Positions 34,091 through 48,626 of a DNA stretch of 64,000 nucleotides are shown one piece after another. Each line of letters opens with the position of its first letter. Within the stretch, counting starts at the first letter, position 1. This DNA is from Octopus vulgaris (taxonomy: Eukaryota), in the NCBI GenBank assembly GCA_951406725.2, contig OX597816.1, positions 75,144,001-75,208,000 on the forward strand, given 5' to 3'. A model generated the notes under the pieces. That model had not been told where the DNA came from. It searched no databases and worked only from the letters and a program-made list of their open reading frames with translations. The position numbers were made by a program, and so were the translations under genes.

Positions 34091-35423
34091 GTTATCTATC
34101 ATCATAAAACTAAGCAGTAAGCTGGTAGAATTGTTAATGTGCTGGACAAAATGCTTAGTAGCATTTCATCTACCTTTACACTCTGAGTTCATGTTCTGCT
34201 AAGGTCAGCTTTGCCATTCATTCTTTTGGGGTTGATAAAATAGGTATCATTTGAACATTGGAGTCGATGTAATTGACTAGCACCCTCCCCACAAAATCCC
34301 AGGCCTTGTGGAATTTCATTGTGTCGTAACATGGATAAAAGCAAACAAATAGCTTCCTTGTGCAAGTGCAAGCTAGACTCCCTAAGTGGAGAAAAACTGA
34401 TCTATTTAAGGAAATTGCTGGGTTCCATTGCAATAGGTAGAAACTCAAATCAATACAAAATATGGCCTGGATTGTGATTACCAGCATGAACGTCAAACTT
34501 CAAAAAGTAGTTAACCATTTAATGGTCTTAGTAAATTTATACTGTCCAGCATAAATAAAAGTCAACTTCATTATATTTTTTCTGTAAAAAACTATTCTGA
34601 CACTAAATGAGTCAACTTCCTGTACATCATTTTTCAACAAAAAAAATTTCTAAAAAAATTCTGCAAATGATCTATTCATGTTATTTACACATCCCCTAAA
34701 GTTAATTTTTGTTTTTGCAAAAAAAGTGCATAAATTACATGGATTTTATGGTACACACACACACACACACACATAATATATATGTGCATGTATATATATA
34801 TGTATGTATATAATATAAATAATATGCATATATGGGTACAGGATGTCACCAACTGTGTAAGCAACATGAAGTATGAAAACAGAGTTAAATATGCAAACAA
34901 TGAGAGGAAAGATACAAAACAGGACAAGTAGCATTCAACGACAAATGAGGAGTAGATAGATAGCCGACAACTGGTGAAGGGTCATTCCCTGTGTTACTTG
35001 TATATATATATATGAAGGGTCATTCCCTGTGTTACTTGTATATATATATATATATATTTTCTATATTATGATTTAATTGAACGCCACGCATCCATTTCCA
35101 AGTATATATATATATATATATATTACTCTTTTACTGTTTTACTTGTTTCAGTCATTTGAGTGTGGCCATGCTGAAGCACCACCTTTTAGTTGAAGAAAGT
35201 GATCCATAGACTTATTCTTTAAAAGCCTAGTGCTTATTCTATTGATGTCTTCTGCTGAACCGCTAAATTACGGGAATGTAAACACACCAGCACCGGTTGT
35301 CAAGTGATGGTGAGGGAGGTGGACAAACACAGACACAAATACACACATGAATATATACATATATGTATATAGAACAGGCTTATTTACATTTGACAGATAT
35401 TTGTTCTCATCTTGTTTGTTGCT

Positions 35424-35469
35424 AACACAACGTTTCAGCTGATATAACCTCCAGCCTTCATCAGGTGTC
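35424..35469 (-). ncRNA. Minimal type I hammerhead ribozyme
   Basis: minus strand GACAC-CTGATGA-A-GGCTG gaggttatat CAGCT-GAAA-CGT-T-GTGTT: intact core, stems I and II pair, loopless palindromic stem III (ACGT) as in PLE minimal hammerheads. Confidence 0.75.
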
Positions 35470-35536
35470 TTGGGAAAATTTCGAACCTGGGTTCTCATTC
35501 CTAAGGTATTATTATTATTTTTATTATTATTATTCA

Positions 35537-35608
35537 AGTCACTGCCTGGAATCGAACTCAGAATCTTGGGGTTAGTAGCCTGCACTCTTAACCACTACAC
35601 CATATACC
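35537..35608 (-). promoter_or_regulatory. tRNA-like Pol III A/B-box cassette in the PLE 3' UTR
   Basis: A box TGGTGTAGTGG (35592-35602), B box GAGTTCGATTCC (35548-35559); acceptor stem does not pair, so not a tRNA gene. Confidence 0.75.
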
Positions 35609-37214
35609 TGCGAGCAATTATGGAGTGAATTTTATAAATCTAATATTTTCCTATCCTTCCTTAATACTGGTTCCCATATGCTATTCATATCTGCACTCGG
35701 TCTGCTTAGGAGGCTGTTGTGTTCTAGCATATGTCTTGCTTCTTTTACTTTTCGTATTTTCCAGTGGTGTTCTCTGTCTATTATTTTAACTTCATCCCAC
35801 AGAGGGAGATGGTTTTCATTTTACCATACATGATCAGCTATACCCGATTTATCAATATCTCCTCATGTCACAGCTTTGTGAAGTTCCTCTACCCTTATTT
35901 TGAGATGGCAGCATGTTTCGCCTTTGTATAACCTACCACAGCTGCATGGGATGGAGTACATGCAGTTTTTGATCATATTCTCTTCTATTGGTGGTTTTAC
36001 CCGAAGGAGATATTTGTGAAGTGTTGTATTAACCTTGAATACTATCCTGATGTCATATGGGCCGCATATCTTTCTTATCTTTTCGGAGAGGCTTTTCACA
36101 TAGGGTGGAGTAGATAGTATTTTTGGGGGGTAGTTGTTGCTTAATAGATTGTTACTGAGCTTGATCATTTCTTCATGGTGGGTATCACGATTGCTACTTG
36201 TATTCTTTGATCGATGTTTTAGGCACTGAGCAATTTCCCTCTTTACACTATGGATGGTGGGAATTGAAGTTAAGGTATCATCCAGTGAAGGTTGGCTTGC
36301 GGTATACGGATACCCTGAATCCATACTTGGTGTGTGTTATTAATACATCCAGGAATGCTAACTGATTGTCTTTTTCCTTTTCCATTGTGAACTGTATTGA
36401 TGGCTTTATTGAGTTCACATGATCTAACAGCACTTGGACATCTTCCTGGTGGGGCCAGAAGATAAAGGTGTCATCAACATATCACAGCCATAGGTTGGTT
36501 TTAGTGATGTTGACCCTAAAGCCAAATTCTCAAAGTATTCCATGTATATAATGGCTATTATTGGTGATAATGGTGAACCCATAGCTAAACCCTCTTGTCA
36601 ATATATATCAATGTCCATACTGAAATAGGTAGTTTCTACACAGACGGTCAACATTTCCATCAAGTTTCTTATTGGTATACTAGTGTGTTCTTTTAGATGG
36701 ATATCTGTCACTAGTTTTTTTGAATCACCGATAGTGCTTCACCAGTTGGGACTTTGATGAACAGAGTTATTACATCTAGACTCACCATCTGGTTGTATTC
36801 AGTGGGGATATCCTTGATCAATTCTTTGAAGTGGGTGGTATTCTTCACATATGATGTTGACTTACCTGCTAATTGACTGATTACATCCACAAGGAAGCGG
36901 CTCAGCGGATGACATGCTGAACCTCTACAGCTCACTATAGGTCTTAATGGAATACCATCCTTGTGAATCTTAGGGAGACCATCAAATGTAAATAATGTAC
37001 ATAATTCCTCATCTCTTAAATATAGAACTGTATTAGGACAGACTTCTTTCAGTTTCTGTCAACCAAATCCACTCACATAAAAGGCACCCAGTACACTGTG
37101 GAGTTGTTAATATTAGGAAGGGCTCCTAGTCATAGTAGGCAAGCCCAAACAGACTGGAGCCTGGTGCAGCTCTCTGACTTACCATGCTCACCATCTTTAG
37201 TCAAGCTGTAATGT

Positions 37215-37373
37215 ATGTATATATATATATACATATATATGTATATATATATATATATGTATATATATACATGTATGTATATATATATATGTATATATAT
37301 ACATGTATGTATATATATTTATACATATATATATATATATATATATACATACATATATATATATACATACATG

Positions 37374-37471
<98 letters not shown>

Positions 37472-37490
37472 CATATATATATCTCTATAT
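37215..37490. repeat. Long compound (TA)n/(TACA)n microsatellite
   Basis: directly visible; source of the YI-repeat ORFs. Confidence 0.98.
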
Positions 37491-37960
37491 ATAAAACTAA
37501 AATGCGTTTGGACCGCTTGGATCGCTTTCAAGGCCACTACATCCCGTTGGATTGACTCCAAAATTTACAGGGACATGTAAAATGAGGTGACGATGCCCGT
37601 GGGCTATGTTAGAAATCCCTATCTTAAAAGGTGTCGTTGCTAGGGCCAAAAACCCACTTTGACAAGTCCACTCCCATTCTTTAATGTATCTGTCTTTCTC
37701 ACTCACTCACGCTCCCAGCACTTTTTCACTCACTCTATTTCCTACCTTCCCATCACTTTCACTTCGTCAAACGACGTTCTTTTATGTATCTGTCTGCATT
37801 CAGAGAGAATTATCATCGCTACCACCAACACCACACAATCATGACAACAAATATGAATCTCGCCATCGCATTCTATTGTCTGCCTGTCAACGTGCCGATG
37901 GAGCAAATACAAACAGAACACACCAACGAGCGTTCGTGTTCTGGTGATAACATAGGTTTT
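37482..37960 (+). mobile_element. Possible Helitron-like repeat, 5' part only
   Basis: begins tctctatatataaaact like the two Helitrons and is CpG-rich; no CTAG end found. Confidence 0.3.
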
Positions 37961-47100: not shown

Positions 47101-48626
47101 GTAAGACAAAAAAAGGATTTTGTCCCTGATGTGTTTTAATAGTTAGCATAAATATTGATTTATAACAAACATACAGGCATGGCTGTGTAGTTTAGTAGCT
47201 TACTTTACCACCATATGGTTTCAGGTTCAATCCCACTGCATGGTACCTTGGCCAAGTTTCTTCTACTGTAATCCCTGGCCAACCAATGTCTTGTAAGTGA
47301 ATTTGTTAGAAACTGTGTGGAACATCATCATCTAATGTTTGCTTTCCATGCTGTCATGGGTTAGACAGTTTGATTGAAACTAGTAAGCTCAAGAACTACA
47401 CCAGGTTCCAACCTAATTTGGAATGGTTTCTATGGCTGGATGCCCTTCCTAATGCCAACCACTCCAAGAGTGTTATGGTTGCTTTCTACGTGCCACTGGT
47501 ACAGGTACTATTAACATGACACCAGCAATGGCCGCAAGTACAATTTCACTTGGTTTGATGAGTCTTCTCAACCACAATATATTGCCAAAGGTCTCAGTCA
47601 CTTACCATCACCTCTGTGAGGCCCAACATTGAAACATCATGCTACTGGCATAATGTGTGTGTGTATGTGTGTGTGATCACTTGACAACAAATATTGGTTT
47701 GTTAACGTCTCTATAACTTAGCAGTTTGACAAAAGAAACCAATAGAATAAGTACTGGGGGTAATCTGACTAAAACCCTTCAAGGTAGTACTCTAGCATTG
47801 TCACTGAAACATGTAAAAGAAGATACAAGGCAGCAAATTTTGGGCAGAAAGTCTGATCAGTTGACTTCCTCTGGATGGAAGAAAGACAATGTTTTTTTAA
47901 CTTAGAACATAAATAGGTCTAACTAAATTCCATGAGATATTTGTCTATTCTCTATTGATTCTATCAATGCTTTTATCTAACATCTGCCATCCCATTCAAG
48001 TATGATGGTAAATGTAAGGCAGTCATCATCTTCAGCAACACATTTCCAGTTGTTTTAGACGTCCAGTACAGTTACACAGTTTAAATATTCTTTGAAAATA
48101 GTAAGTCAAGAAATTGTTGTTTAGCTCCAAATCAACCGTCACTGAGTAGACTTATCACAGCCATTCTAGATGTTGCCATCCCATCTAGGACAATATTATT
48201 TGATGTCTTTTCCTTTTCTAACACGTTAGTCTGTGAGTTGAGGGAAATTTGGCTGCTATTTTTAGTAAGTCATGCAACAATTTAGAAGCTGTTGTTGGCT
48301 AAAAGTCAAAGAAGTTTTCTTCACCCACCCATCTCTAACTCTGCATTAACCACTATATCCAGTCCTTCCCTCCCAGAGCTTGTTCTCTGTAGGATGCCCT
48401 CTATAGCCTCTTTTCTTTTTGAGTTATTCATGAAGAACAACTACACCAGTCTCAGAATTCTTGGAAGGGCTTTGAAAGGCAAAGATAGACCCTTCTTCTA
48501 GACCAAAGCATTTAAAAAAAACAAGAAGAAAGTCAATGAGCTGAACCTTAATAGTAAAGCCAAGTAAACCATCATCCTTCTACTTTTCGAAGGTGTTACT
48601 AAAATATTTCCTTTTCTACATTTCAG

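Follow-up and report, generated by a model that had tools for sequence, protein, structure and literature searches.

Does the 3' untranslated region (UTR) of a Penelope-like element (PLE) in Octopus vulgaris contain a complete promoter-bearing unit, and is that unit mobile in its own right? The question is raised by a decayed PLE copy on the minus strand of a 64-kb stretch of contig OX597816.1 (assembly GCA_951406725.2). This stretch is called the window here and supplies all coordinates below; the genome searched was the window's own 2.8-Gb, AT-rich assembly. A preliminary description of the locus had placed there, in succession, a stop codon, the A and B boxes of a tRNA-type RNA polymerase III (Pol III) promoter, an (AAT)n spacer, a minimal hammerhead ribozyme and the element tail, and all of these were recovered at the minus-strand positions it gave. 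PLEs are the least understood major class of retrotransposons, we know of no role for their minimal hammerheads, and the transcription and mobilisation of the hammerhead-bearing short repeats of animals are still debated. We show that the genome holds about 8,500 copies that extend from the tRNA-derived head within this UTR to the 3' terminus of the PLE. These copies are probably those of a Pol III-transcribed short interspersed element (SINE) unit with the PLE as its partner, the whole unit also being that partner's 3' UTR.

The window copy (35380..36978, minus strand) follows the order reverse transcriptase (RT), C-terminal GIY-YIG nuclease and composite 3' UTR, as in a PLE of the endonuclease-bearing (EN+) type, and is 92% identical to a 610-nt family reference piece over 35978-35380. 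A PLE open reading frame (ORF) had been described directly upstream of the promoter. The TAA at 35634-35632, a stop kept in the family alignment, does close the frame with the GIY-YIG-type motifs, but the ORF of this copy is broken by stops and frameshifts and is lost beyond a 5' truncation at about 36978. Just 3' of the TAA, the window copy lacks 7 nt of the consensus (consensus TAAGCCCTAAAATTC, window TAAAATTC). Between stop codon and head lies a 23-nt leader (35609..35631), and the tRNA-derived, SINE-type head itself spans 71 nt (35538..35608, with +1 at 35608). It is followed by the (AAT)n microsatellite spacer (35507..35537), the linker CCTTAGGAATGAGAACCCAGGTTCGAAATTTTCCCAA (35470..35506), a minimal type I hammerhead of the PLE kind (35424..35469) and a 3'-terminal segment (35380..35423) ending in GTCAAATGTAAATAA. 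The spacer varies strongly in length, with AAT, AAC and AGT runs of ~10 to >150 nt among copies, and (TGTAAATAA)n and/or a 37-nt extension are added to the terminal segment in other copies. The element end at 35380 was common to every family copy examined, to within 2 nt.

Three genome searches, using 35380-35640, the ORF end only (35640-35960) and the tail only (35380-35505), together gave 87 independent loci with a common 3' end at 35380 and differing 5' ends. Loci L011, L013, L015 and L022 on contig C17, and L004 and L014 on contig C20, have common flanks and are segmental duplicates of single insertions. In the ORF-anchored sample, for which the query did not include the cassette, 26-29 of 29 copies nevertheless continue past the stop codon into head, spacer and ribozyme. 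The cassette is therefore family-wide, as expected of the built-in module that had been proposed, and is not a one-off SINE insertion. The family consensus 3' of the stop reads GCCCTAAAATTCACTCCATAATTGCCCAC-GGGCATATGGCGTAGTGGTTAAGAGCGCGGGCTACTAACCCCAAGATTCCGAGTTCGATTCCAGGCAGTGACC-(AAT)n-AACATCGAAAAATACCTTAGGAATGAGAACCCAGGTTCGAAATTTCCCCAAGACACCTGATGAAGGCTGGAGGGTATATCAGCCGAAACGTTGTGTTAACAACAAACAAGATGAGGACAAATATCCGTCAAATGTAAATAA. A run of four thymines before the ribozyme (35478-35475, within the linker) had been noted as a possible Pol III terminator in the window copy; this run is TTT in the consensus and in 24 of 29 copies, and no TTTT occurs from the head to the 3' end of the consensus. Furthermore, heads with another tail, or with none, were sought in ~350 kb of sampled genome and none were found. 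A recognisable PLE tail lay downstream of 87 of the 107 head-like matches, and the remaining 20 were, by inspection, degenerate or rearranged family copies or partial matches of 16 nt.

The 5' ends of the copies are concentrated at the head. Among 109 non-redundant copies aligned to a 633-nt reference piece, in which position 377 is the equivalent of tRNA +1, 27-28 had their 5' boundary at reference 363-385, from 14 nt upstream to 8 nt downstream of +1. Those head-start 5' ends that were unambiguous fell at reference 373-382, and the observed 5' ends lie 2-11 nt upstream of the A box. The tail-anchored sample (n = 29) is unbiased for copy length; here 11 copies start at the head, 1 in the leader, 3 inside the head and 9 in the microsatellite, while 5 reach the ORF. 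Eleven of 29 starts within a 23-nt window around +1 correspond to a binomial P of 1.4e-5, and the microsatellite spacer forms a second, broader zone of 5' ends. A start at the head was likewise seen in three of four copies for which a perfect hammerhead had been the sole criterion.

Consensus words of 24 nt, placed along the element, were counted across the whole genome at a tolerance of 2 mismatches (reversed-pattern controls, 0-1). The word in the RT region, ~1 kb upstream of the stop, has 308 copies, that at the ORF end 2,050 and that in the leader 2,187. The 5' part of the head has 10,750 and its 3' part 13,667; the counts then reach 18,882 after the spacer (a word overlapping the linker), 20,574 in the 5' half of the hammerhead and 25,468 in the terminal segment. 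From the RT region to the ORF end, truncation is gradual (6.7-fold over about 1 kb). Across the 36 nt that precede the head, the profile is flat, with a rise of 1.07-fold; at the head edge it steps up 4.9-fold, and no other step is of similar size. The excess at this edge is about 8,560 copies; the step at the first bases of the head thus places the start of about 8,500 copies there. Copies with head and ribozyme and without the upstream ORF, as envisaged in the preliminary description, are in large excess (10,750 heads against 2,187 leaders and 2,050 ORF ends). Head-start copies are about 4 times as numerous as the partner's ORF-end-bearing copies and about 35 times as numerous as its RT-bearing copies.

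Another class of 5' ends lies further upstream. At ~36109, the window copy is without 51 nt that are present in the family, and at least seven copies (L012, L035, L037, L047, L052, L058 and L060) start at this very point (ATTATGAAGAAAAGAGAGG), forming a second discrete class of 5' ends ~790 nt from the 3' end.

The head at which the short copies start carries promoter boxes in the absence of a tRNA fold. In the window, the A box TGGTGTAGTGG (35602-35592) matches TRGYNNARNNG, and the family consensus A box TGGCGTAGTGG matches TRGCNNAGTGG at 11 of 11 positions. The B box AGTTCGATTCC (35558-35548) agrees with GGTTCGANNCC at 10 of 11, as does the B box of the consensus, and the two boxes begin 44 nt apart, a tRNA-like spacing. 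A combined A/B-box regular expression found 2 matches in the window, where 200 second-order Markov simulations gave an expectation of 0.02. The other match, TAGTTTAGTAG...GGTTCAATCCC at 47188-47234 on the plus strand, probably belongs to the head of another tRNA-derived SINE family, and heads like it are present in the sequences that flank L024, L047 and L070. ARAGORN, also at a relaxed threshold, called no tRNA in the window or in consensus-grade copies, and the Rfam tRNA model gave no match at E up to 10 on consensus-grade copies; the tRNA ancestry of the head thus shows in its promoter boxes only, and the head does not fold as a tRNA. The consensus head has no acceptor-stem pairing (GGGCAUA versus CAGUGAC), no anticodon-stem pairing and no cloverleaf. 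Boxes that are kept while the stems are lost are typical of SINE heads, and the retention of the boxes despite loss of the acceptor and anticodon stems favours a promoter role over a tRNA-like RNA structure. The leader CCATAATTGCCC (35609-35625 and family consensus) is an imperfect inverted repeat of the first 10 nt of the head, GGGCATATGG. This repeat could form a hairpin across the presumed start site; alternatively, it may date from the acquisition of the head, as the remnant of a palindromic PLE junction.

The hammerhead of the window copy reads GACAC-CUGAUGA-A-GGCUG...CAGCU-GAAA-CG-UU|GUGUU (35469-35424), with a predicted cut after U 35429, between 35429 and 35428. Its helix I is GACAC/GUGUU (5 bp), followed by the core CUGAUGA, an unpaired A, helix II GGCUG(G)/(U)CAGCY, GAAA, and an ACGU that replaces helix III. 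The ACGU is a palindrome and thus a self-complementary stretch that allows dimers. The conserved core CUGANGA ... GAAA, the A15.1-U16.1 pair and a non-G at the cleavage site are present in both window copy and consensus, and helix II is perfect in the consensus (GGCUG/CAGCC). In the minimal hammerheads of PLEs, helix I is open and 4-5 bp long, stem II has an unpaired nucleotide on its 5' side, and helix III is reduced to a self-complementary stretch (Cervera & de la Pena 2014, PMC4209133); the point-by-point match to these features identifies the window ribozyme as the minimal PLE type. That the ribozyme is intact, as first described, holds for the family as well, the consensus 46-mer occurring with at most 1 mismatch in 3,511 genome copies (reversed control, 0). 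A strict hammerhead test was passed by 30 of the 109 sampled copies, most failures being due to CpG decay. Minimal hammerheads were also sought by structure in ~350 kb of sequence, with 51 matches in this PLE family and 1 elsewhere.

Searches with the Rfam hammerhead families gave no match at E up to 10 to the window or to perfect-consensus copies, a miss that is likely explained by models that expect a real helix III; at gathering and E-value thresholds, the only Rfam matches were microsatellite or hairpin look-alikes of microRNA families. The fold with helices I and II only has -12.0 kcal/mol, against a monomer minimum free energy of -12.6 kcal/mol. A designed dimer that completes helix III via ACGU has -22.3 kcal/mol against -29.2 kcal/mol for the minimum-free-energy fold, and in RNAcofold of two 46-mers the hammerhead dimer was likewise not the minimum-free-energy fold. 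Dimerisation through the ACGU palindrome is thus feasible in this model. A cleavage footprint was sought in the genomic 5' ends, where the counts rise only 1.24-fold across the cut site and are not diagnostic. The short copies span the cut site, so their RNA templates were uncleaved, and to judge from these copies the hammerhead in monomeric short RNAs probably stays mostly uncleaved. From the motif we infer that the unit can cleave itself.

Two further ribozyme variants were seen in the sampled loci. The C17 group of segmental duplicates carries a ribozyme-killing change, CAGCCTAAAC with a 3-nt deletion. At L037 (3010-3050), a different minimal hammerhead of the PLE type, CTGATGA-A-GAGC-TCC-GCTC-GAAACGTT|AAAC, is part of an element of ~230 nt that has (TA)n as its flanks; the 85 nt upstream contain no A or B boxes, which suggests another PLE family without the head.

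The partner that surrounds the unit can be classified from its coding remnants and its mode of insertion. In the window, the RT is broken and spread over three minus-strand frames, with the motifs LPKIHK, GLAMGSPLSP and YVDD. Pfam searches of the single short ORF fragments gave no match, GIY-YIG included; the RVT_1 match (43.1 bits against a cut-off of 29.6, E 5e-11) needed a read-through of the RT region. The longest open fragment (35863..36336, minus strand) covers the linker and the start of the GIY-YIG nuclease, in a frame that extends, past two stops, as far as the terminal TAA. Among database proteins, the one closest to the ORF fragment comes from Octopus sinensis (63% identity) and is uncharacterized. 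By inspection only, the GIY-YIG-type region has the consensus VYSIPCSCGRLYKGET..R..EEH, with two Cys between the equivalents of GIY and YIG, which is the hallmark of canonical EN+ PLEs (Craig et al. 2021, PMC8557442).

The insertions themselves point the same way. Heavy 5' truncation, an inverted 5'-truncated neighbour and a tail extension of 30-40 bp are described for PLE insertions (Craig et al. 2021, PMC8557442), and PLEs have also been reported to carry dual hammerheads, one on each strand, at distances of 100-700 bp (Cervera & de la Pena 2014, PMC4209133). Of 27 head-start copies in the octopus family, 18 have an inverted family fragment directly adjoining the 5' end, as have 9 of 17 ORF-truncated copies; the 37-nt extension TGTACATAATTCCTCATCTCTTAAATATAGAACTGTA lies 3' of the element end in 11 and 6 copies of these two groups. 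Short and long copies therefore bear the same PLE insertion signatures, and at the same frequencies. Many minus/plus (5'-to-5') pairs appear in the lists of perfect matches. In such pairs, the head is often where both arms end: pairs of B-box 24-mers are spaced 113-134 nt apart, where 124 nt is expected if both arms begin at the +1 of the head. Among 100 perfect matches to a hammerhead half, pairs within 700 nt were inverted in 13 cases and on the same strand in 1. A clean direct tandem was found in 0 of the 109 aligned copies. The preliminary description had considered a tRNA-headed, retrozyme-like element; non-autonomous copies that start at the head do exist. A retrozyme-like arrangement is not supported: no tandem arrays were seen, and the copies are dispersed or inverted 5' to 5'. 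Taken together, the RVT_1 match, the two-Cys GIY-YIG region, a series of 5' truncations that all share one 3' end, and the presence of inverted partners and of the 37-nt extension identify a canonical EN+ PLE, and by these sequence features the family is an abundant canonical Penelope-like retrotransposon, with C-terminal GIY-YIG and a composite 3' UTR.

Where two short copies stand head to head in inverted orientation, long and nearly perfect hairpins result (L092, 161-429, and many -/+ pairs). One such hairpin scored 97 bits against an Rfam plant microRNA model, below gathering, and if transcribed, hairpins of this kind could yield hairpin-derived small RNAs.

Collectively, these results suggest the following scheme. 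The 3' UTR of the PLE holds a complete SINE unit, made up of the tRNA-derived head, the (AAT)n spacer and the PLE's own ~125-nt tail with its minimal, dimer-type hammerhead. Pol III would initiate a few bases upstream of the A box and read through the T4-free unit. The RT and nuclease of the PLE would then recognise the shared 3' tail and copy the short RNA in trans, in the way that SINE RNAs are copied by long interspersed elements (LINEs). Since the autonomous element itself includes the head, every insertion of more than about 240 nt would plant a further potential source of Pol III transcripts. The reading of the boxes as a Pol III promoter has indirect support from their conservation, from 5' ends that lie roughly at the Pol III initiation site and from the lack of a T4 terminator in the unit, and on these grounds we infer Pol III transcription of the unit.

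Several points weigh against this scheme. The counts rest on consensus 24-mers, and unequal decay of the segments could move the ratios by tens of percent, although not five-fold. The 5' ends, at 2-11 nt upstream of the A box, are slightly nearer to it than the usual start of a tRNA gene. The sample is without full-length copies, so that the 5' end of the family and any direct pseudo-long terminal repeat (pLTR) lie outside its reach. In favour of the scheme, on the other hand, short and long copies are intermixed in a tree. A label-shuffle test for a separate lineage of short copies gave 21 changes against a shuffle mean of 21.1, and no diagnostic sites separating the two were found; this tree, with 210 sites and ~5% divergence, has little power, so whether the short copies are their own sources is not decidable from it. 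In a comparison of ages, perfect heads that have the leader and those that lack it did not differ significantly in CpG state (4/10 versus 52/90, P = 0.33), and a comparison by tail divergence is confounded by the choice of sample.

Of the other explanations, the one that survives best is that an older, independent tRNA-headed (AAT)n SINE inserted once into the 3' UTR of the ancestral PLE master copy, or was joined to it when cDNA synthesis switched template onto SINE RNA. The head would then be a hitch-hiker with no role for the PLE, and the short copies would be that SINE family, which later came to use the PLE tail or already had it. The (AAT)n directly behind the head does resemble a SINE tail, the leader that mirrors the head start is what a relic PLE-type palindromic junction would leave, and the same kind of origin, by SINE insertion into a terminal repeat, has been proposed for Cassandra, Helenus and Ajax (Kojima 2024, PMC10886601). 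Against this stand the failure to find a head with another or no tail in ~350 kb and the PLE tail behind 87 of 107 heads, as well as the fact that short and long copies could not be told apart by sequence, in a test of low power. We regard this account as a whole as possible and rather improbable. As a statement of origin only, insertion of a head-(AAT)n SINE into the ancestral UTR is plausible, and it would still imply Pol III-driven, PLE-mobilised short elements today.

It is less probable still, in our estimation, that the autonomous PLE carries a Pol III gene of its own whose short RNA serves the element itself, either as a partner in trans or as a ready template that saturates the RT. The short RNA would pair, via ACGU, with the minimal hammerhead in long PLE transcripts made by RNA polymerase II (Pol II), and the active dimer would trim them. 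If true, this would provide a mechanism for the minimal hammerheads of PLEs, and no earlier retrotransposon would be known that encodes its own SINE as well as itself.

The concentration of 5' ends at the tRNA +1 equivalent could also have arisen from RNA processing, by an RNase P-like cut of a longer Pol II transcript, or from an RT stop, with the A and B boxes as inactive relics. Processing of tRNA-like structures in long transcripts by RNase P and RNase Z is known and lends this idea some weight. We consider it very unlikely, given a consensus without acceptor stem or cloverleaf that is negative with both ARAGORN and the Rfam tRNA model, and a sequence that has kept precisely the promoter boxes while its stems have decayed; an RT stop, moreover, is expected at the 3' side of a structure and not at its 5' edge.

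Ordinary 5' truncation combined with a counting artefact, through unequal decay or detectability of the 24-mers or through one amplified truncated master copy, has in its favour the heavy 5' truncation of PLEs (PMC8557442) and the reliance on consensus words and yet is scarcely credible, since two adjacent CpG-free upstream words give 2,050 and 2,187 and the next, 6 nt downstream, gives 10,750, since the aligned copies independently show the same head-start excess, since the truncation between RT and ORF end is gradual, and since the upstream flanks of head-start copies are mutually unrelated, or are inverted partners of varying length, so that this class is not one duplicated locus.

The preferred reading therefore remains a SINE unit that is shared with, and mobilised by, its PLE partner, and the window copy can be viewed as one member of this family. 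With its T4 run, broken ORF and 5' truncation, it is probably a dead relic as a source. Its 5' truncation point is adjoined by a 55-nt inverted fragment of the element's own 3' terminus, including the 37-nt tail extension (36979..37033, plus strand). The fragment has 98% identity to reference positions 594-647 in reverse orientation and stands head-to-head with the main copy. The whole 1.65-kb insertion is nested in another interspersed repeat of ~300 bp, the halves of which lie at 35123-35385 and 37034-37077; the two halves are contiguous at other loci (L067, L082, L084 and L087), and this host repeat recurs in many flanks. A long (TA)/(TATG)-type microsatellite at 37178-37580 adjoins the insertion, and several sampled family copies, as well as the other element in L037, lie in or beside (TA)n, (AAT)n or similar runs, which fits the microsatellite insertion bias reported for PLEs.

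If the preferred reading is correct, the octopus family would identify a PLE as the partner of a SINE and would mean that integration in the PLE style, with inverted partners and tail extension, also acts on short templates of the Pol III type. It combines in one unit a tRNA-type head with the tail and ribozyme of a PLE, and this unit lies physically within the autonomous partner. The case is a countable one, with about 8,500 head-start copies against about 2,100 that are linked to the ORF and about 300 with the RT region, and it offers a tractable system in which to ask whether minimal hammerheads act in trans as dimers. For annotation, it joins roughly 25,000 fragments that would otherwise be split between "SINE/tRNA" and "Penelope" labels.

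The preliminary description had known of no account of the combination of Pol III promoter and hammerhead in a PLE. The combination as such is known from SINE-like elements of schistosomes (PMC6765202), whereas its PLE-embedded form was not found in the literature; full-text searches turned up neither a tRNA-type head within the UTR of a PLE nor a SINE that joins a tRNA head to the tail of a PLE. The element resembles the known PLEs with minimal hammerheads (PMC4209133, PMC8557442) in its RT and C-terminal GIY-YIG nuclease with two Cys, 5' truncation, inverted partners and 30-40-nt extension, and in a minimal type I motif near the 3' end with a short helix I, no real helix III and dual motifs on opposite strands. 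It differs from them in the tRNA-derived head with its Pol III boxes in the UTR and in the discrete class of copies that starts inside the UTR; the PLE papers searched mention no such head or boxes in a UTR or pLTR and no such class.

Pol III promoters derived from small-RNA genes also occur in the long terminal repeats (LTRs) of TRIMp3 elements, the non-autonomous LTR retrotransposons Cassandra (5S), Helenus (tRNA) and Ajax (Kojima 2024, PMC10886601). As in the octopus unit, the promoter lies in the terminal repeat region; it probably came by SINE insertion, an origin that is plausible for the octopus head too. The autonomous partners, as argued for TRIMp3, must keep their Pol II promoters and do not share the Pol III module (Kojima 2024, PMC10886601). 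TRIMp3 elements are of the LTR type, only non-autonomous and without ribozymes, whereas in the octopus PLE the autonomous element carries the module. The non-LTR retrozymes of metazoans likewise have no coding capacity, carry hammerheads and probably depend on PLEs (Cervera & de la Pena 2020, PMC7229834), and animal retrozymes are described as derived from PLE pLTRs, with no promoter mentioned (Li et al. 2026, preprint 10.64898/2026.07.22.740005). Retrozymes form head-to-tail tandems that give rise to circular RNAs via classical type I hammerheads and have no defined promoter; in the octopus unit, in contrast, inverted pairs prevail, the hammerhead is minimal and a tRNA-type head is present.

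Sm-alpha of schistosomes has a canonical, efficient type I hammerhead and is often tandem, so that cleavage frees monomers. Sm-alpha and Sj-alpha are SINE-like elements that combine a Pol III promoter with a hammerhead, and with the octopus unit they have in common that they are short, non-coding retroelements, present in thousands of copies, in which the hammerhead lies downstream of the promoter (Ferbeyre 1998 and Laha 2000, as reviewed in PMC6765202). The text of that review names no autonomous partner for them; the octopus unit differs in its minimal PLE-type ribozyme, in its dispersed or inverted copies and in lying as a whole inside the 3' UTR of an autonomous PLE. With classical SINE2 elements and their LINE partners, finally, the unit shares an A/B-box head, a body, copies that start at the head and a 3' tail that its autonomous partner has in identical form. 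The LINE partners of SINEs normally share the tail only. In the octopus, the PLE signatures of inverted partner and tail extension take the place of simple target-primed ends, the partner is a PLE and not a LINE, and the autonomous partner itself contains the SINE head.

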